Origin: Asterias rubens
Lineage: Eukaryota
DNA length: 64,000 nucleotides
Reading direction: 5' to 3'
Assembly (NCBI RefSeq): GCF_902459465.1
Contig: NC_047080.1
Location: 5,270,001 to 5,334,000, forward strand
Position 1 is the stretch's first letter. The number at the start of each line of letters is the position of its first letter. Shown here one piece after another: positions 10,301-31,300 of this stretch. The notes below the pieces were generated by a model that was not told the origin of the DNA, ran no database searches, and worked only from the letters and a program-made list of their open reading frames with translations. A program made the position numbers and the translations under genes.

Positions 10301-13300
10301 TGAAACTTGAATACAAATTCAAAGGTTATGTTGAAATGATGCCATTTCTACCATTGGTAATCCCTAGGGTTATAAATTCCAAGGAGCTTTTGGAAACAGT
10401 ATCCAAAGCACTTGAGAAGTAGACCAATGAGCAGGGTTTCTTTGTTTGTGGAAAAAAGTATTGTCTGATTTTCTTCACCATGCCGACATAAAAAGTCTGA
10501 ATTCAGCCAAAAGTCTGAACAATCTCATCCCTGTAGTAACACCATGTGTGTATCTTACTTGCCAGGTAGAGTTTGTTCTTAGAGAACTGTCTTTCTTTAT
10601 TCCACTACCACAAAGTAGATTTATTGGATGTTCGGGAGACTTCTCAGTTCTAAAAAGAACTGTCCTGCTGTTTAACCACTACCTGGGCGGAAGGTGTAGA
10701 AAATTGGCTGGGACTACTACTTTAGCTTTTAGGATCGTGATTAACTGCACTACTGCGGAGTCAGTACTTGAATTGGTCGTGAAAAAGTTCTTGAAAAAAT
10801 CTAAGAAGCAACACTAACTAAATCAAGCTGCAAGGATTAGTAGCAGTTAGTCCGACTGTACACTAGGGTTGGAGTTACATGCATGCTACCTTATTTTTAC
10901 CTGAACAATAATAAAAGCGCGGTGATGAAATCATGAAAATGATTGTATCTCGTGATACCGGTGGAATCATCTATCCTGATTGTACCAAAAATCTGCGTAG
11001 CATGCAGAGTACCGATGAAAGGGGTTGGATATAGAAGCATGAGGGAAGGGTGAAATGGGGTAAAAAAAAGATGCAAAATGGAAAAGAAGAATAATTCATG
11101 AGATGGATATAAAGCAAAAGATGACAAAATGATCAGAAAGAAAATGGCTGCCATGAAGGATTGATTGACCTATTGCCATGGTTACCGAGGAGAAAAGGCT
11201 ATTTTAGATGCGACTGATGGAACTTTGCTGACGTGAGTCACAATGATGGGATAGTTAGAGAACTTGATCACTTAATACTTGATTCCTTATGTGGAAAAAA
11301 GTTGGAGAGAATTTTGAGAACTTTGATAGTTTTTATATTTGGTGATAATTTTGATAATTTTGAGAATTTACTTAGGAAATGTTAGATAATGATGTTTACT
11401 CTATCCCATGTTGTTTACATCACTCAATTTCAGGTTTTTGAATTTTACAAAGGGTTCGTGGGCATGAGGTTTTTTTTCCCTCCTTAGTAACCATAGCAAC
11501 AGATATATCCGGATCAATTCATGCATGACAAAGCGTGACGCTAAGTCAGTCTACCTGAACAGTAGTAGAAGTCCCATGAAGAAGTTGCTGAAGTTATTAT
11601 TACGATTAATGGCTTTGCCGTCGTCCGCTATGCTGATATTGCCGAAGATCTGAAACAAAATAAGTCAGTGACGACCCCCCCATGGGAACACAACAGGAAA
11701 GACAAAGTCACGGACCAGGTTCAGTTAGGTTTGTTAGTTAAAATAATACATGAAACAAATGGAAACATAACATACGCCTTTTACTTGTTGAATGACGACA
11801 TTTTGTTGTTGTTGTCACATAACTGAAAGCTTGATTTTCAAACGTTACCGTGACAAAAAAAGTTTATGGCCTGATGTTTTGACCCAAGTAGAGTCTTTCT
11901 CGAAGGCTAAATAACAACACAACATCATTCTTTTGGGTATGCTGCCAAAACATAGAATTTGAACTGCCTCTAGCTACCGGGCAACCTCGGTAGTCTAGTT
12001 GGTTAGACACTGCTCTAGAATTGAAAGGGTCGTGGGTTCGAATCCCACCTGAGTAACATGCCTGTGATATTTCTTCACAGGACTCAGGAAAGTACTGAGT
12101 ATACAGTTCTACATGTAACACACATCGGTGTATTGGTAAAAACCAAAATTAATGCTCCATCTTTGGTTTGTTTGTTTGTTTGTTTGTTTGTTTGTTTGTT
12201 TGTTTAAATGAGCTTCCCATCAAGGGAACTCGGCAACTCCCACAAAGGGATATAAACACCAAGTCTGTTTGATGTTAAAATCACTGTGCAAAGTGTCACT
12301 GCTCTAAAACTGATGAAGGAGCCCTATTTCATAGAGCTGCTTAAGCACAAGTAGCTAGGCATAAACAGAATTATGCTTACCAGAATTAGGTTACCAGCCA
12401 AACAACCATGTCACAAGTACAAATTGCGACTGGTATCCAGCTAGTTTCTGCTTAGCAGGAAACTGCTTAGCAATATTTTCTTTCCTAAGCAGCTTTATAA
12501 AATTGGGCCCAGGGAGCCCAAACCGGGGCTGGAGCCCAAACCGGGACGGGGAGCCCAAATTGGGCCCAAAGAGCCCAAGTTGGGCCCAAAGAGCCCAAGT
12601 TGGGCCCAAAGAGCCCAAGTTGGGCCCAAAGAGCCCAAGTTGGGTCCAAAGAGCCCAAACCGGGACCGGAGCCCAAGCCGAGGTTTAGGAAAGGTCCTTT
12701 GGATGTGATTGATAAAGAACCTACCTGCATGCCAATGATTGCATAGATGAAAAACAGCATGAATGTTAGAAGACAAACCCAAGGCAGCGACTGTAAAAGA
12801 ACAAAAACAATTTCAACATTTTACTTTTTACTGTTTACGCAACAACTAGTCCCTCTTATGGGAGTCAGGTTGGTGTAGTGGTTTCTTGCCGTGCCATGCA
12901 CCTCAATCCTACATGAGGCACTATGTGGATTGGGTTTTCAGTCCCTACCTGACTGCGTGGGTTTCCCTGGAATAATTCTCTGGGGGTTTTCCTCCCACAT
13001 CTTAAACTGAAATGTCTTCATTTTTTGTCTTCTCACCATGTCCATACGCTGAAAAGGCTTTGACAAGTATTAGTATAGATGTGGATGTAGATTTTGAGAG
13101 GCATTGTATGTACATGTAACTGTATGTTCAGTGTGCGGTCACACCATGTGTACATGTACATGTATATCTACTTTGCTGTGCAGATTTGTCCTTGATAACT
13201 CCTCTTCCTATTTGTTCTACTGTCGAGGAGTATGTTTCAGAATTCATCTGTTCTTTCAAATCATCACTCCTTTATAAGGAGTTCCGGACCACTCCCCTTT

Positions 13301-16300
13301 TCTCACCTTGAATGATTGTACGAATGTCCAGAGGAGGATTCGAATGGAGGACCCTTGACGGAGTAGTTTGATCAACCGAGCAGCACGGAACAACCTCAAG
13401 ACACTGAGATTAATGAAGCCATCCTGACCGAGGGGGAAAAAGTTTGAATATTCAAATATGCAAAATCAAATGATTTGAATATTCATAAGATATCCTTCAA
13501 CAATAGACCCTTCCCATGAACTATGTACATTGCACATAGCGCGTGCGCACTAACATTTTGGTTGGCAAAATGAGGGAAAATCGCGCTGTTTTGTACGTGG
13601 CTAATGGCTGTGTGACGCAGACGCGATTGCGCGTCTGCTTAGTGCACAACTCTATGGCGTTTGCCAACCAGTAGGGTCTGTACGAATGCGTAAATGTAAT
13701 AAGCATATTTCATGGGAAGGGTCCATTCAAATTGTTTCAAACTTCTTTAAAACTTCATGCAAATACAGTGTGAAATTTAGGATTTTTTTTTTTTTAAGGT
13801 TTGTTTCTTAAGCCTGGTTCATGCTTTATGAAAATTGAACAAACTAAACAAAATTCGCTTGGTCACATTGGAAACATATCTTGAACTTGGCTTTAAAGAA
13901 TGTTTTGATTGACTCCAGCAAATAAATCTCTTCTACAACAGATATTAAATTTGCATCGGGATAAAGAATATCTCTTCTAGTTCTTGCATATCAATTTGAT
14001 TAGTCTAATTCAATCAGTTTGTGCGTTTCAAAAGACTTTTTGTCCAAATCATTTAAGCAGTCAAAATATTAATGCTGTTTTTGGTTTTGTTTTTCATTCC
14101 GAGATACTGTGCAAATATAGTTCAACTCACAACAGGTTATAAAACAAAACAAAGTTTTATACAACCGTTTAAATCTGACGAGAAAACGTAAAAACAGGTT
14201 ACGGCTACTACAGAGTCTACCACCCTCAGCGACATGTAGCATAGCAAACAGCAGCAGAGGAAGTGGGGTCTGTCTAGGCCGTTGGCTTAAGGGTTGGCTT
14301 CGTGGTGAGAGAAGGAATGGATGGTTGGTCCCCCCTTGGGGAACAGAGTAGGGGGATTTCCGGTGGGGATTTCCAACAGAGGGTGAATGGATGGAATTGA
14401 CGCTATACTTACATCAGGCTACAAGAGGGAAAAATCAGAGACAAAAACAACAAATTATACGAGCATGCACCGGATTTGGGGGGGTTGTATATTAACACTG
14501 ATGGTTTAAAGTGTAATATAAGGGGGCCCTATAGGGGGAGGGGTTAGGCGGAGGAGGAAAAAGGGGTAATAAATCCCAGGGTTCCCTGACCACGATGACC
14601 TGCTGTAAGAATGACGGGACTGTATCAACATTCAACCAACGGAGGCAGGAAATGCAGAATTCGACATGACTTTTCTTTCTCAACAAAGAACAAGTATTTT
14701 TGATTTTTCAAGATATCCTTTTTACAGTGGTTTGATTTGGCTGAAGGTTCTGTCTTAAAGGCAGTGGACACTATTGGTAATTACTCAAACATTGGCCATC
14801 GGTTTAGCGTTTTCGCGTCTCGGTTGAGGCGCAGTGACAATCGCTGTTCGGACCAACCAGTGACCGATTTAAGGACTCGGTTGGGCTTTGGTTGGGGTTG
14901 TCAAAACGCAGCCCTTATGTAGGTGGTGCAAATAGTCTGGTTCCTTATATGCATTTGTGTTATACTCTTTACGTAAAACCCAGGGAAGCAGACTGAATTG
15001 GTCACAGCATGGTAAAGCTTAATGCACGCATGTCTACTTACTCCAAGTTTCACTGCAGTAAGACACTTATTAAGGGAATCCTACACAATTGAATTGAATT
15101 CTAATGCCAACTACTGCTTGCCAAACTTGTTAGAGGTTATTTACTTCACATAAGCACCATGTAAGTTAGTATTAATGTTAAGACACCTAAATACAGTTTG
15201 TTGCAATGTAATCTATAATCAAGTGTCCTCAACTCAAAATAATGAAAAAAAACAAAAGTAGCTATGTAATTATCCCATATTTCAGTATGACCATCATTTT
15301 AATAAAAACAAAGTATGCTCAACTGACAACTCTTAGGCAGCATTTTAGCAGATGAAGTTTTAAAGATATCGTTAAACCTTTTGTGTAATACTGGAACCGT
15401 TTTTCTTTCTTTTCAAAATATTGGGCTCAACTACAAAAATAAAGGCTACCGACTACATGTAAGTATTAAAACCTTGGAAGGGGAGGGGCTAGGGTGTTGG
15501 TAGGGGAGGGAGGGTGCTCAGTTATTTGAAGAATACTTACCCCGACTTGAGTTATAATAGCGTCGGCAATGCTTCCTAGCACAGTGATGAAGTCAAATGT
15601 GTTCCACGCTGCACGGAAGTAGTTCTATATGAAAGGTTTAGATTCAAGAAGTTAAAAAAACAAAAACTCTTGCCATACAGCAGGAAAATTTACAGAAAAG
15701 ACATTTGAGAAATGAAAGATAGATGGAAAAATGTGGTTTGAAGATGACCGCAAGAAACACTTGTTCACTTTATAAGTTACTTTTGACATTGAGAGTTGAA
15801 GAATATATTTTCTGAGAGAAGGTTTCCAACAAAAATGACCCAAAACAATGACATCTGTGCCAATGACTGATGAAAAATCATATTTTTCTTTTGCAAATAA
15901 TACTAAATTGGAGAGAGTTTTAGAAGAAAAAGAAGTAAAGAAAGAATAAAATGAAAACTAATCAAGAGATTATAGAAAAAGTTAAAGAAGAGGTTTTAGA
16001 AGAGGTATATCACTGTCTTAAAACTGCCTTGATCCTTTTGGGAACCACTGGAGTTTATGAAATAGCAATGGCTGTTATTTAGAGCAATTCCAAAGAAATA
16101 ATCGTTGTGCTTCAAAAAGTATTACCCCTAGTCAATCCCCTAATTATCCCATTTTCTTGAACCATCTCAGCTCCCTGACGAGTATACAGCCTGCGCTGCC
16201 AAATAAGTAGTATAACAATCTGAATCTATCACAAGGACCATATCTGCCCCTCGTGGGTGAAGAGAAGCAATTAGAGTCAAGTGTAGTGCTCATGGACACA

Positions 16301-19300
16301 AATAATTGTCATGACCAGGATTTGAACCCACACCCACCAACATAGCTTGTATACACCTGCAACCTAGGACCTCCTTGTCCCTCTTTTGCAACAGCTCCCG
16401 TTGGTTTTGTACACGTTTTCCAACTGTGGACCTTTCCCGAACCGTGGACCCTATTGCCCTCTTTTGTTATGGGTCCTCGGTTTGAATAAGTATACATGTA
16501 CCTACCCACCCAGAATTGAGTCTGACACACATTAATTGCTTTGCTCTAGAATGCATTACGATATGTGAGCAGACTATTTGATCTCATTGTCAAAACACGC
16601 ATTTGAAAAAAAACAAAAAAACTTTTATATGATTTTTTTCAACAACAAAAGACATTTGTGAATGATATCCCACTAGTAATCAGACAGATAGACAGTAATA
16701 ATCCCTGGATTGTAATTTACATAAAAACAGAAAAAGAAATGAGGAATGATTATAGAACGCATCATTGCAATCACAACAAAGTCAATGTTGAGCATTAGTC
16801 AAACAGATGCTGAATATTTTTAGTTCGTGCTTTCTCTAGTTATTTTTCTCCAGAAAGAGGACACAATTTCCTTTTTAACCATCTCTTCAAAAGATTTTCA
16901 AGAAAGTTTTCAAGAATACTTTCTCAGCGTCAGCAGTCTACTAATGTTATGATGTAAAAGTGATGTAAAAGAATTTGTTGTGACTTTATACATGTGTATA
17001 TTTAAAGACACTGGACACTATTGGTAATTGTCAAAGACCAGTCTTCTCACTTGGTGTATCTCAACATATGCATAAAATAACAAACATGTGAAAATCTGAG
17101 CTCAATTGGTCGTTGGAGTTGCGAGATAATAATGAAAGAAAAACCACCCTTGTTATACATAGTTGTGTGCTTTCAGATGCTTGATTTCGAGTCCTCAAAA
17201 TCTAATTCTGAGGTCTCGAAATAAAATTCGTGGAAAACTACGTTACTTCAGAGGGAGCCGTTTCTCACAATGATTTATACTATCAACAGCTCTCCATTAC
17301 CCGTTACCAAGTAAGGTTTTATGCTAATAATTATTTTGAGTAACTACCAATAGTGTGCACTGCCTTTAAACTGGATCAAAGATTCAAATTTGTCAGCTCA
17401 GCAATAATAAGGTTCTTAACTGCAATTTCATTATGAAAAATGTGTATACAATTGATAAATAACCCAAAATCCATATATAATTATAATAGTTTTTCTTGCT
17501 TTCATTAACCAAACAATTTCTTTTGAGATGACTCTTGATCAACAACCTAAATAAACCAGAAGCTCCAAAAAAAAGCAAAACCACTTTGATAAAATGCAAT
17601 AACAACCTGATAGTCCTGAGCCGACAAATTGAACAACAGAAAAAGTAAAGTTTGAATGAGAATTAAATTTTGACAAATAAAACAATGTAGACCATACACA
17701 CAGCTTGATTGGTCACAAACATCAAAATCATCAAAAACAATGCCATGAACCTGCACACAAAATGAATTGTTCAAATATTTAAATGAAGAGCATCTCATGC
17801 ATATGCAACGATTTTATGCAAAGTAGGCTTGTTCATGCATCATCAGCCATTGAGCATGGGTCATGAGATTGGACATTTTCAAACACAAAGGTAAAGGGCA
17901 AATTTAGGTGACAATGGGTACATTTTTAAAAATCCATTGCATATTCAAATAACGTCCCATGTTTTTTTAAAGAACTTTTGAACCAAGTATGAAGAATTCT
18001 GTAAAATGCACATTCAATTTTGCCACAAAATGTGGTTATTCACATACTATTAAAAACAGTGTTATCAGTTGAACTCTGTTAAAAAAATTGTTTAGTTGAT
18101 GGAAAAATTGTTTAGTTGTAATTTCAAAACACATTACACCAATCCGGATAGGCAGTATGCCCCGCCCATCAAGGTGGGTGGAGCATAAATGATTTAATTT
18201 TAGGCGCTTTTTATTGGTCAAGGAAGGTTGGAATTGGAAAGGTAACCTGCATTCTTAGCTAAAAAAATTAGTCCACAGTTTAGAGATTGGACTTCTTGAC
18301 AACTTTCACCTCACAAAGAATCAAGATTCTGAAAGGTTTCCTTGAAAATCTACAAAAGACATATATGTTTCAAACTACATTGTGTATTTGGAAATTTGAT
18401 AGTATTTTTCTTATTACTACAGCTACAGAAATTGAAGTAGATGTCAGCATACTGCTTGCATGAGAAATTCAAATGAGTGGGTGTGGTTGATTGACAGTAT
18501 AAACTGGGTGTGGTCTTTTGCCAAATCCGGATTGGTTCATTCTAAAAATAGGGGTTAAAAAACTGAATTGATATACATGTAGATCTGTTTGTACCTTTGG
18601 CCCATAAGCAATGAGCTTAAGAACAGCTTCAATAGTGAAGAGCACCGTAAAGGCGATGTTGAGGTAAGCTAGAACATTAACGTACTCATCAGATGCTTTA
18701 TATTGCTGGGTGATTCAAAAAATTGGGGGAGATGGAATCGGGGGGGGGGGGGGGGGGGGGGAAATGGTAGAGGAGGATAGAGGAGGTGTTTCAAAGAAGA
18801 GAAAAAAGAAAATAATACACATTTGGATGATAATGATTGACAACATGCATGGGAAACTGAAAAGAGTTCATGTGTTTCAATTCCAAATTTCTGTCTGATA
18901 AAGATGCTCATGTTGATTTTAAACTACTGATAAAAGTACAGCGGCAAAAGAGTTTGCGTTTCATACTTATTTGAATATATTTCAAAAGGTCTTTACTGTT
19001 CAGGAGATAAACAATTTGAAACTGAAAAACATCTTCTCTTTTGATTTTTCAAAAAACGAATGATAGCATGTATACGTCATGCTAAACAACAATGACAACA
19101 ACAACAACGATGACAACAACAACAACAATGCCAGAAACAACGACTGACAGAGGCACCAAAGGATATTATAGTAGACTTGTGGACAAGTCGATAAATGTCT
19201 GTCGCGGCAATAGCGTTCCCACTCTCTCTGCGATTCCCGCAACACTGGCGATTTTCTCGCAAGACTGCTGGCCCCTGCGAGCCTACTGCTCTTGTGCTGT

Positions 19301-22300
19301 GCAGTCTCATAATTGGGAAGTAGTAATCGGCAGCCGGCAGCTCCGCGCTAGGGCAGTGATCTCGCGAGAGAAGTATTCAATCGCAGAAACCTGAATCATT
19401 ACACCACCACACCATGACTTGCGACACAGACCATTTGTTAACGACTTGTCCACAAGACTAATACAATAGCTAAGATGGACGGTGGAAGAGCATAGCCCAG
19501 GAGGATGATGATGCTGCTGATGATTTTGGTGATTACACTCAGTAGAAGGTAGATCTTGCTGAGTATCTTACCCTTGGTCCAAACCCAATTAGCTTGAGGA
19601 TTGCTTCGATTGTGAAGAGGACTGTGAACGCTATGTTCAAATACTTCAAAGTGTCCGTGTAGGTAGCCTCAGCCTTATATGTCTGAGGATAGGGGGAGGC
19701 ACCGGGAGTGCCCATTGTTAGTCAAATTAGTAACTGGCTGTGTTCCGAATTGGCAGCTACATGCTACGGCTATGGCTAGATGTCCACCCCAACATGTGCT
19801 GAAGTATGGCACGCACTTAGCAATGACCGTAGCCGTAGATGTAGCCACTTATTCGGATACAGCTCTTGTTTTTTATGGAAAGGGTTAATCTACAATACAC
19901 TGATCCTGCAGTAGGCTGTAAGAGTGTTTCTTTATATGCAACTCGTGCAGAATATTGTCGCTGGATAATTGAGTAATTCGCGTCATGACGTCTGTGCTCA
20001 GCGGCTACAATTTGTTCATTCTTTGTAAATTGCTTGATTCCAATGTTCGACATGTGGAGGGGCTTAGTGATTAGCTTGTTCAATCAAAACCAACCAACCC
20101 CAGGTCATTAGAGTTTAGTGCTAGCATTTCAAAAGATTGATGTTTTGCAATAAATGGAACCTAATCGGTTCAAATCTCAAGAAAAAAAAGAAGAAAAAAA
20201 AAAAAATTCAATGTGTAATAAATGTTCGTAGTATGACTGGTACTCAGCCCTACACTAAAGGAACTGTGTCATCATGATCAACGCAGGTTTGTGGCTGTAC
20301 ATGGGATGATGAATTCTCATCCGGTTACAAGACGCACATGCGCTCTCCATAGATGCAACTTGGAGTTAGGGCGCCCTGGTGCTGTATCTGGCTGAGAGTT
20401 CATAATTCCATGTACATCAACAGGCTTTGGCTCAATTTCATAGAGCTGCTAAGCACAACAATTTGCTCAGCATGAAATTTCTTCCTTGATAAAAACAGGG
20501 TTACTAAACATTTCCATTTGTTGCATATTGCTTGTTACTCGTATTCAGCTGTCGTTTGCTTATCCTGAAAATCATGCAGAAGTTTGGTGTGCTTAGCAGA
20601 TGTGCTTAGCAGACCTATGACATTGGGCCCTGATTTGATTATGATGACACAACACCTTTAAGGATCAGTGTATTTCTAGCGATGCTGTCTTTATACAAAG
20701 CACTCAAATAGAATAAAGAATTGAATACAATAACAGGTGTCGTCATCGCTCATCTACCCCATTAGGAATCCTTGGTATCGCCATTCTCAAAATGGGCTCA
20801 AAAGGAACTTTTTTGTTGATTTTGATGCTATTTGAATGTCTCCTGATTGATTGAATGGTTTTTCTATTGGTGGACATATCAATGGCTTCAGCTCCTTAAG
20901 TGGTCCAAATTGATATTGATAGCTTATGTGAGCAGTGTTGTGTCTGATTGGCAACCATAACTTCGAGAAAATGAGTTGCAGCTTCAGAAAAGTGTCCAAA
21001 TTAGAATAGTTTAATTGAATTGTGAAGGGTTGATTCCAATTGTTACCAGAGAAGAACATTGGTTGCAATGCAAGTATCAAACTTGAAATAGTTCAATTGA
21101 GTTTTAAAGTAACAATTTTGGTTGGCAACCATACATGTAGCTAGCAGAAAATGAGTTATGTCAGAAAACTACTACCGGATACACATTGGAATAATTTAAG
21201 TGCATTTTGAAGGGTCGATTCTTATTGGTGTCTATAACTCCATGAAAATTGGTTGCAACATTAGACAAGTATCCCAAGTGTTATGAGTGATAACGACCCT
21301 GTGCATTGTTATAATTGCTAGACTACTCTATTATTCCATTCTTCATCATGGTTAACGCCATCTTGGTTGTTTCTCATTCAAGTCATTGTAAGGCCGTGCC
21401 GAAACGGCAACTTCGGCTAAAGCTGGGGCTAGATCGCGTTCGTCTGCCTATTCTTCAACACTGGCAGACGCGTTGATCTAGCCGTAGCTGTAGCCGAAGT
21501 CACGGTTTTGGACACAGCCTAACTGAGCTTGAGGTTGATGAGAAATTAGTCTGGCTACTTCTACTGTATTATAATGTAAGTATCAGTATTGAAGATTCGC
21601 TATAGAGATCATGGGTAGACAGGGAATATGTCATAAGGTTTATCGCGATTCAGAACCCCAATGCGTTGTGGGTAGGCGGTTGGGGCATTTGCGACCGCGC
21701 AGTATGTTGTCATGCCAACATGCGCACGCATGGCCAATATCTTTGTGTGGGTTCAACAGCACCCTCTCTTGATATTTTGCCATTTGCGATAAACCTTATG
21801 ATGGCGTTATCATGATGAAGGTTTGGACTACGGACTTCAATAACTCATCTAGCATCTCTGCCACAATATTAAGAAATAAAAAGCAGAAATTAAGACATGT
21901 CCGTCAGTTGAAGATATGTCCATTATGTCAAGTCCTGTTGGAGAGGGTTGAGGTGAGGGTGGGGTTAGGGTCAAGATCAGGGTCACAGTAATTTAACAGT
22001 TGGGAAGTAAAAGAAGGTCAGTCAATCAGATAATCAATAAGGTATTATTAGCTTGCATCGGAAAAAAACAAATTGCACTACGATCAATAATATGTGTAAA
22101 AAAACAAACCACAATCAATACTTTATCAATTATTGACTAAAAAATCCCCAATTAATAGTCTGTAAATAGTTGTCAGTCAATAATCGATTCAACAATGAAC
22201 AGCTTATCAATATTCAGTCAATAATCAGTTTAGCATAGAACAGCTATCAAACTATCAAACTATTGATCAATAGTCAATTCTTCAGTAGTCAAGTCAACAA

Positions 22301-28300: not shown

Positions 28301-31300
28301 GAGAAGAATGTTGGAGCATTGGTTTTTGGGAGACATTGGAAGTTTAATTATTGTGCAATTGTAGTTTTCAACTTTTATATGCATGTATAGTTGATTATAG
28401 TTTTATCTGTAACTGTTTTTAAATGATACCTGTCAATAGCGGTTAGGCGCTGTGGGATAATAACATTAAAATAAAACATCTGTTTTGGGTTGGGTGACTC
28501 GAAGAGTGCGGAACCATCCTTCTTGGTGGATGGAGAAAGGAAGATTGTTTGGGAGGAGTGGTTTGTAGGAGGGAAGAGGAGGTAAGACAGTCTACTACTT
28601 TCGGGTTGGTTATCTTGAACATCTGACAAGAAGAAGGAAAGTGTAAGACCATCCTCCTTGGAGGATGGACTAACCTCTTTGGAGGATGGAGAGAGGAAGG
28701 TGGATGGAAGGAGGAGGTAAGACGGTCTGGTACTTACGGGTTGGTGGTTCTGAAGATGATCCTCCTTGGAGGATTGAGGCAGGAATGGGTTGCTTTGGGG
28801 AAAGGGAGTGGTTAGGAGGAGGTAATAGAGTCTTCTACTTACGGGTTGGTGGTACTGAAGATGAAGAGTGAACTGAATGGAACCATCTCTTTGGGACCAT
28901 CTTCATCTTCTTCTCCTTCTACATCAAGATAAGTCAAATAAATATCTCAAAACCACAACTCTTAGGGCCTTGTCACATGAGGCTACTTTTACAGGCAACT
29001 TGGAGGCAACCATTCGTAGTGCACTGTTACAGGACCACTTTGGTAACACATTGAGTCATTCTTATTAAACAATGTCTTACAAACCCCAAGAAACAGAATG
29101 TGAACATTCAAGTGTGAATGGATTCTCTTCTTGTTGGAGATTGCCTGGAACTGGTTGCCATTAAATTACCTTGTGTGACATGGCCTAAAGTTTAATTATC
29201 TGTGGTTTCTTCAGTCGTATAATATTAATGCAAGGATAAAACTATGTGACCATTGGCATTAGTCAACTCTAAAACTAAAAATATAGTTAAATTCTATAAA
29301 CTTATGAACATTTTAGTTCAACTTAAACTTCTGTTCTTCACCCAGTATTAAAGTGGCCGTATAGAAATATTATACAGAAATATCTCCCTCCTAAATCACC
29401 AACTGGTACCAATTAAAAAGTAAAACCCTTCATCTAACTAGGTAATATGCAGATACAAGTAATTAGGTTGAACAAATAACATTTACCTTTTCAATTGTTT
29501 TTATATATAAAAGATTACAAAATAACAAATAAAATTGTCACTTTATTACTGTTTTCAATCAAAGTTGATTTTGAAAAGTCCATTTTGATGGTTTTGTTTT
29601 CATTACATTAACATCTCTAAGTATGTCCCCTTCATATCTTCTGGATATCAAGTTGCCATAGCAACATAACTTGATGTGAAGAGGACATATTTTTCTTATT
29701 TTGGTCTTGCCTTCTTCTTCATTATTGTTGGTTTTGCGGCAGCACGGACAGGACGACCAGCAATCAGAATTACAGACGGCCGTGATACACGGGCAACTCA
29801 CTGGTCCCATGGTAGGACATGGCCATGGAATACCGTTGACATTCATATAGGTATACCAGCGGCGGTACCAGGGAATTGGAAGGTCCGCATCCGTTACTTG
29901 GACGTCTGGTTGAGGTTGGGGTCATAGGTTGAAGGTCAAATTGGGTTGTGGTGGTGGTGGTGGTGGTGGTGGTTGCACAATTAAGTCAGGTTGGAGCACA
30001 ATTAACACAAACCAAAACAGGAGAAAAAGGAAGGTAAACATGTGCGGGTTAAAATGTGAAATAAACGGACAATAGACAATCATAAAAACAGGGTTTGGTT
30101 TTGTAGAGCGACAACAAACAGTTGCTATCAAATTGAACTGAATCAAACAAATAATGGTCCTATATTGAAATGTACATTATGAAGAACATTAAACATGTCG
30201 TCAGATCATAGAGAAAGATGAAGGTGAAAATTGGCTGATATAACAACTTCTAAAATAATAATTTATTCATTTATTATGCGCATGTTTTATAAAACAAATT
30301 CTTGTTATAGTAGGTTTTTTGAAGTTTATAAGAAAGATTCAACCTTTGTTTTGATGACAGGTCAGAATTTGCATAAAATAAAAGAAGATAGTAACTGAAA
30401 AGTTTGTACTGATATAGGTTTTGACTGTGAATTGTTAGCGAATGACTTTGCATAAATTAAGAAGGTTAAACTGGAAAGTTTGTGTTGAAAAATATACCTG
30501 TGACTTTGTATTGTTAGCGAATGAATTTGCATATATTAAGGAGTTGATTTGAGAAACCAAAGATTGGTTTGAGGATTAGAATAAGCGGCTCTGTGTTGAT
30601 GAAGTAGAATGAATGTTTGTATCAGGAATAATAGTGTGAGGGTTAATTCTACTCTGTTAAATAATCCATTATTAACAGTTATCAAACCCAAACCAAGATC
30701 ATATAATTACTCAGAATGCATGAATTCTCCCAAGCACTAATATGAAGAATGTTGATTAATGTGTTCTCTTACTAGACATATCAGTTTGATATGTGAAGGT
30801 TCTTAAAAAAAAAAAAAAAAAAAGGAATGAATTCCCAAGACTTGATGACAAGATGCAGAAAAGTGATATTGATGCACAAAAGAAAAGACAATGAACAAGA
30901 AGATGACTGGGAGTAACATCGGATGAATACGTACAGGACAATGGTGGGTACGGAGGTGGGGTTCTGACGGTGAAGGGTAAAGAGGTGAGATTAGGCAGGT
31001 GAGAGGTACAAAAGTGAGAGGTGCAAAGGTGAGGGATATGGGGGATGAGGGTGAGGGTAATGAGGTTCTTAGTTCTAGGTGTGAGGGCTAATTGGGGAGC
31101 TTATCCAGCATGGAGTCTAGAGGTTTGAATAAACCAACTCCTCGTTTTTATAGCTATGCAAAGCTACAATTATGGCATTTGTCAGCCCTGAACAAAGATT
31201 CAGACAATTTGGGAATCACTCAGGATTTTTTAGACTTGACGCATCGCCAAACATTTGCAAATACAATTTTGAAGAGACGTCTTTGCAAAGGGGGGTTTGG

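Follow-up and report, generated by a model that had tools for sequence, protein, structure and literature searches.

In vertebrates, calcium channels of the Cav2 family present a classic case in which splicing sets the kinetics and pharmacology of presynaptic channels, as two residues can be inserted into the linker between segments S3 and S4 of domain IV (the IVS3-S4 linker). The insert is encoded by exon 31a (e31a) and reads ET in Cav2.2 (gene CACNA1B) and NP in Cav2.1 (gene CACNA1A; P- versus Q-type). In mammalian brain e31a is largely skipped, and the NP insert affects the omega-agatoxin IVA sensitivity of vertebrate Cav2.1; Lin and Bourinet, both in 1999, are said to have found that ET slows activation and that NP lowers this sensitivity. 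Skipping of e31a in Cav2.1 and Cav2.2 is under Nova2 control in mammals (PMC12149502), a domain IV insert alters the activation kinetics of Cav2 (PMC10657410), and variants of the IVS3-S4 linker in Cav1 tune voltage-dependent activation through linker flexibility (PMC5279877). Here, an exon of this kind is described from the starfish Asterias rubens, within a stretch of 64,000 nt of contig NC_047080.1 (positions 5,270,001 to 5,334,000) referred to below as the window. The exon, CCTGAT, lies on the minus strand of the window and is very probably a real cassette microexon of 6 nt, expressed from the Asterias Cav2 alpha-1 gene, that places Pro-Asp (PD) in the IVS3-S4 linker; its inclusion is probably regulated and may alter gating.

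The exons for IVS3 and IVS4 are separated by an intron of 2,117 nt, the gene running on the minus strand. Read along the gene, with a slash for each splice site, the IVS3 exon ends at 15541 with ATT ATA ACT CAA GTC GGG/gtaagt (IITQVG), that is ...ACTCAAGTCGGG/gtaagt, and the IVS4 exon starts at 13423 with cggtcag/GAT GGC TTC ATT AAT (DGFINLS). Between them the minus strand reads tgcatgctcgtataatttgttgtttttgtctctgatttttccctcttgtag/CCTGAT/gtaagtatagcg across 14413-14418. Pyrimidines occupy 14 of 17 positions in the acceptor of CCTGAT, the donor is GTAAGT, and a TGCATG with its first base at -51 ends 45 nt short of the exon. Both flanking exons are in phase 0, so that CCTGAT inserts Pro-Asp in frame. 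Its plus-strand form, ATCAGG, has a single occurrence in the intron, at this position, with the correct splice dinucleotides on either side.

Transcript contigs were examined from four runs that hold the IVS4 exon; runs X3 and X4 are from A. rubens (two separate studies) and run X1 is from a close relative. In X3, X4 and X1 alike, one contig brings 13423 and 15541 together with nothing but ATCAGG (CCTGAT in gene orientation) in between, skipping 2,117 nt whose ends are CT..AC, or GT..AG on the gene strand. The joining contig of run X3 is 2,928 nt long and a loose contig end at 13307 in a different run extends into the exon that follows downstream, which identifies the joined sequence as spliced mRNA. 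CCTGAT is spliced into mRNA in two Asterias species, and it is virtually certain that the exon is real and expressed. The 6-nt microexon of the original prediction, which had been made from the letters of the window, has thereby proved real and transcribed: the junction it led one to expect, GTCGGG-CCTGAT-GATGGC, occurs in the contigs of three runs, and the U-rich acceptor, the CCTGAT, the GTAAGT donor and the UGCAUG about 45 nt upstream are all present in the sequence. The exon had also been called invisible, which holds for the list of open reading frames (ORFs) but not for RefSeq, whose protein models already contain it.

The echinoderm RefSeq models and their cluster members were retrieved with the full-length crinoid Cav2 (P0001) as query. 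A representative-protein search with the IVS4 exon had been useful only for finding this crinoid protein, returning mostly genomic ORF fragments that read through the acceptor. A search with a 251-residue piece for transcript fragments of other echinoderms found none, the long 'loops' encountered being intron read-throughs and not inserts. Among the listed A. rubens isoforms, seven contain QVG-PD-DGF (isoforms X2, X3, X6, X7, X10, X11 and X12), and isoform X5 is X2 minus PD and otherwise identical; the annotation therefore treats PD as a cassette. The exon is already known to automated annotation (RefSeq), and no paper describing it was found in the literature searched. The new observations are a conserved intronic island around the exon and a 3-nt version of it in the starfish Patiria miniata.

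The host gene, as judged from its protein matches, is that of a Cav2-type (presynaptic-type) calcium channel alpha-1 subunit. The best matches of the flanking exons are human Cav2.2, Cav2.1 and Cav2.3, above Cav1; on the IVS4 exon Cav1 chains reach E ~1e-6 against 1e-13 for Cav2, and on the IVS3 exon Cav1 scores near Cav2. The IVS3 exon matches residues 1529-1555 of human Cav2.2 (7mix) and 1666-1693 of Cav2.1 (8x90), and the IVS4 exon residues 1560-1597 and 1695-1732, respectively, leaving between the matched stretches four residues (A-ET-N) in the Cav2.2 chain and one in the Cav2.1 chain, which is without NP. The window exons show 100% identity to A. rubens models annotated as calcium channel type A subunit alpha-1-like. 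When aligned at the insert, the starfish protein reads TQVG/PD/DGFINLSV, Cav2.2 reads TEIA/ET/NNFINLSF and Cav2.1 reads TEFG/NP/NNFINLSF, and pairs of models with and without the insert put it at the identical place. In these alignments the insertion point of Pro-Asp is the same phase-0 codon boundary as that of the vertebrate Cav2.2 ET and Cav2.1 NP inserts (exon 31a), and the original prediction, which had named this position, was correct to the codon. With PD included, the extracellular IVS3-S4 linker of voltage sensor IV, which is very short, becomes two residues longer.

Compared with e31a of Cav2.2, the starfish exon is alike in gene family, in its place at the phase-0 boundary between IVS3 and IVS4 and in its 6 nt, which add two residues to the IVS3-S4 linker; YCAY motifs also adjoin it, and Nova2 controls the mammalian exon (PMC12149502). 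It differs in that its residues are PD and not ET and in that inclusion appears to be the main assembled form in starfish, whereas e31a is largely skipped in mammalian brain. With the NP exon of Cav2.1 it shares position, size and a proline among the two residues; the effect on omega-agatoxin IVA, however, is a property of the vertebrate channel, and nothing indicates a toxin-related role in starfish. The IVS3-S4 variants of Cav1 are comparable in that alternative splicing alters this linker too, in length or flexibility, with a shift in voltage-dependent activation (PMC5279877), but they belong to another channel subfamily and arise from larger exons, not from microexons of 3-6 nt.

In Patiria miniata the orthologous intron (L001) is 1.75 kb long and contains ...gtgcatgctcatatattg...tttctgattttcccccctttgtag/GCT/gtaagtatggcgtgaattccatccattcatcctc..., in which GCT encodes the extra Ala (EVG-A-DTFINLSV) present in all four Patiria RefSeq isoforms and is therefore a 3-nt exon at the homologous spot. 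A blastn comparison of the Asterias and Patiria introns gives three matches, two of them the coding exons and the third one island, 14318-14482 against L001 40100-40281. Within the island both starfish have UGCAUGCU (Asterias -51, Patiria -59) and a branch-point-like CUGAU (-20 and -21, respectively), and the GUAAGUAU donor is followed in both by three YCAY at +19, +23 and +27, a cluster that spans +19 to +30; of the 40 nucleotides immediately downstream, about 36 are identical. In run X1 a 127-nt unspliced contig over 14297-14423 has zero differences from the window; the other intron contigs of this run have many substitutions and gaps. The conserved island and the invariant contig argue that the splicing signals are constrained, around a coding content of 3 nt in one starfish and 6 nt in the other. 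By alignment, the exon and its flanks are conserved across two starfish orders, and the conservation to which the original prediction had looked is thus present within starfish, the Patiria exon lying inside the island. The features are collected in Table 1.

Table 1. Positions of the microexon, its flanking elements and exons, and the Patiria counterpart (window coordinates unless another locus is named)
Feature	Position	Strand	Basis
6-nt cassette microexon CCTGAT (Pro-Asp), phase 0	14413-14418	minus	sequence, transcript contigs, A. rubens isoform X2 residues 1365-1366 (P0281)
Upstream conserved intronic element: UGCAUGCU (-51), branch-point-like CUGAU (-20), pyrimidine tract, AG	14419-14482	minus	conserved with Patiria miniata L001
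Downstream conserved intronic element: GUAAGUAU donor and three YCAY at +19, +23, +27	14318-14412	minus	first 40 nt nearly identical to Patiria
IVS3 exon, 28 residues, donor gtaagt	15541-15624	minus	100% identity to A. rubens isoform X2 residues 1337-1364
IVS4 exon, 39 residues	13307-13423	minus	100% identity to A. rubens isoform X2 residues 1367-1405
Patiria miniata 3-nt exon GCT (Ala), flanks tag/ and /gtaagtat	L001:40172-40174		sequence and RefSeq models

Recognition of the exon would proceed through the close branch point, the strong pyrimidine tract and the consensus donor, within a conserved intronic island of ~165 nt that has UGCAUGCU upstream and a triple YCAY just downstream. So small an exon would have to be defined by its flanks, for which UGCAUG (the Rbfox motif) and YCAY (the Nova motif) are the obvious candidates. 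Factors of the Rbfox, Nova or Srrm type may regulate its inclusion through these conserved flanks, probably in neurons. Such Rbfox-type (or UGC-type) and Nova-type readings follow from motif identity only, and the motifs are candidate sites. The UGC motifs (Asterias -51 and -47, Patiria -59 and -55) could instead serve a factor of the Srrm/eMIC type. The exon resembles the members of the bilaterian neural microexon programme (Srrm/eMIC, 3-27 nt) in its 3-6 nt, its strong splice sites, its conserved flanking intron, its upstream UGC and its ion-channel host, and several fly calcium channel subunits have eMIC-dependent exons (PMC8797185). As to the protein, a longer IVS3-S4 linker would probably affect voltage sensor IV in its activation kinetics or its dependence on voltage. 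Because the domain IV insert of Cav2 and the IVS3-S4 variants of Cav1 alter activation, channels with PD are expected to activate with a speed or voltage dependence unlike that of the short form; by this analogy, an effect of PD on gating is somewhat favoured.

A hexamer flanked by AG and GT can arise randomly, and the window was scanned on both strands (128 kb) for sites with at least 13 pyrimidines in 17 positions, no nearby AG, and AG followed by 3-30 nt and GTRAGT. Just five sites qualified, 14413-14418 being the sole one of 6 nt, and the chance expectation of such a site is ~0.03-0.08 in this 2.1-kb intron on this strand; with five sites, one of them of 6 nt, a chance origin is unlikely. 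The proposal that CCTGAT is a fortuitous splice-site look-alike or a functionless cryptic exon is effectively refuted by its presence in assembled transcript from three runs and two species, by the RefSeq models and by the island shared with a different starfish order, and it was rejected as having next to no probability. A weightier objection is that the exon might be constitutive in starfish, with no switch, the PD-less models of A. rubens (isoform X5) and A. amurensis being aligner artefacts at a 6-nt exon. Microexons are commonly missed by read aligners, the inclusion form alone was assembled in all three Asterias runs, and the 3-nt exon is in all four Patiria models. Yet the RefSeq isoforms X2 and X5 differ by PD only, models of the brittle star Amphiura show both forms at the same site, and a strongly conserved flanking intron with splicing-factor motifs, such as this island, is typical of regulated and not of constitutive exons. 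Contigs of a third starfish (run X13) also end precisely at both exon edges, the pattern that a branching assembly graph would give, which is a hint only. On these grounds constitutive inclusion appears unlikely, and skipping of CCTGAT in some transcripts or tissues is likely. The 'switch' of the original prediction accordingly finds support in the RefSeq pair X2 and X5 but not in the contigs, which gave the inclusion form only.

Several points weigh against a regulated cassette that alters gating. The runs are labelled only as probable RNA. No direct exon-exon contig of the skipped form was among the contigs listed for the three Asterias runs; since contigs drop minor variants, skipping is neither shown nor excluded by them. 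PD is absent from all eight listed isoforms of A. amurensis (P0166, P0270, P0273, P0275, P0276, P0278, P0282 and P0283), and these, set beside the PD contig of the relative (run X1), mean that either the exon was overlooked by annotation or its usage differs; the A. rubens models fit the window exons better than those of A. amurensis do. The assignment of regulators is drawn from short motifs, and in eMIC-dependent exons the UGC motifs lie nearer the acceptor, so that the -47 to -59 of the starfish motifs is farther upstream than is usual for the class. We know of no electrophysiology for any echinoderm Cav2.

The regulated cassette being the preferred reading, its relation to the vertebrate exon can be considered in the light of other echinoderms. 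The brittle star Amphiura filiformis has an alternative 24-nt cassette at the same boundary, EVG-[NMQSDGEN]-ESIINLSV (12 models with it and 3 without), and the crinoid Anneissia has one extra residue there. No insert at this boundary is found in the listed models of Lytechinus, Strongylocentrotus, Diadema, Apostichopus and Antedon, so that the echinoids, where the original prediction had proposed to look, gave a negative result in the listed models of three sea urchin genera. In the Apostichopus intron (5.8 kb, L002) nothing aligns with the starfish island; a weak 6-nt candidate there, AGCGCT at ~L002:29099, is without support and is not claimed. In vertebrate Cav2.2 models the insert is ET, DT, VS, VK, VR or TT, and in many birds VST, of three residues. 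From this comparison, the residues of the Cav2.2 insert are free to vary, and its length slightly so, and the constant feature is a very small insert at the boundary. As the Cav2.2 inserts are already so varied, a further dipeptide in starfish is unremarkable; PD does differ from ET and NP, but its standing as a 'third dipeptide', suggested in the original prediction, carries little weight.

The starfish exon could have originated independently of vertebrate e31a, in the starfish/brittle-star lineage, at an ancestral phase-0 intron that tolerates small loop insertions, the resemblance to ET and NP then being convergent; the chances of this are judged to be even. It would fit the models of Lytechinus, Strongylocentrotus, Diadema, Apostichopus and Antedon listed above, the sea cucumber intron that lacks the island, and the way in which length and sequence of the insert differ from lineage to lineage (1, 2 or 8 residues in echinoderms and many dipeptides in vertebrates), and Aplysia has no e31a orthologue (PMC10657410). 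Pipelines often miss tiny exons, however, so that absence from models is weak evidence, and starfish and vertebrates agree exactly in codon boundary, in phase and in the tiny size of the exon. Drosophila, too, is reported to have an alternative exon there (PMC10657410, citing Smith 1996), and the YCAY that adjoins the starfish exon is the motif bound by Nova, which controls mammalian e31a (PMC12149502). A common origin and repeated gain in a permissive intron fit these data alike. Shared ancestry of the starfish exon with vertebrate e31a is possible but rather doubtful. A tentative and fairly improbable extension would have an IVS3-S4 micro-cassette with Rbfox/Nova-type intronic control already in the echinoderm-vertebrate ancestor, later lost or unannotated in sea urchins and sea cucumbers, with PD or A and ET or NP orthologous; if true, this would be among the few neuronal microexons conserved, regulation included, beyond chordates. 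The original prediction had the dipeptide switch either predate vertebrates or arise convergently; the shared codon boundary speaks for the former, and the absence of an insert from the listed urchin, sea cucumber and Antedon models speaks against it.

Another short cassette of the family is e24a, of four residues, which like the starfish exon lies in a Cav2 S3-S4 linker and is reported to be conserved between molluscs and vertebrates (PMC10657410), but which belongs to domain III (IIIS3-S4) and not to domain IV. Sea urchin Cav2 models (P0163, P0258, P0153 and cluster members) have alternative cassettes in the IIIS3-S4 linker at the position of vertebrate and Aplysia e24a, of ~14 residues in Lytechinus, in two pieces in S. 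purpuratus and of ~12 residues in Diadema; no such IIIS3-S4 variation is found in the Asterias, Amphiura and Apostichopus models.

Other features of the window were noted in and around the same gene. Across all starfish runs, two segments of the intron that holds CCTGAT, 13493-13735 and 14708-14950, reach contig depths of 10^4 to 10^6; they show numerous joints that are partial or opposite-strand, and look like high-copy interspersed repeats and not like gene transcript. Two duplicated exon pairs on the minus strand appear to be mutually exclusive, one in the pore-turret region of domain IV (10897-11000 and 11551-11658) and the other in IVS1-S2/S2 (18553-18714 and 19557-19685); A. rubens isoforms differ at residues 1300-1336 by the copy of the latter pair that is used. 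A real exon on the minus strand ends ...TACCACCAACCC/gtaagtag at 28842, and ~80 nt downstream a similar ...GAACCACCAACCC/gtaagtac with a good acceptor makes a frame-preserving candidate cassette of 27 nt (the segments concerned are 28738-28764 and 28842-28919). Two further elements lie in neighbouring introns (minus strand, 12520-12650 and ~11970-12060): a tandem array of a 20-mer (CTTGGGCTCTTTGGGCCCAA-like) and a segment resembling a tRNA (…ggtgggattcgaacccacgaccc…). Both are probably repeat or short interspersed element (SINE) sequence.

For annotation, the finding means that the A. amurensis models, and possibly those of other echinoderms, may lack the CCTGAT exon. The difference between 6 nt in Asterias and 3 nt in Patiria, within flanks that can be aligned, suggests selection on linker length and regulation and not on particular residues. 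A starfish microexon at the identical codon boundary would also indicate that such tuning of voltage sensor IV is not confined to vertebrates, and it offers a tractable case in which to ask if, across more than 500 million years, a microexon can be retained, or can arise anew, along with its regulation.

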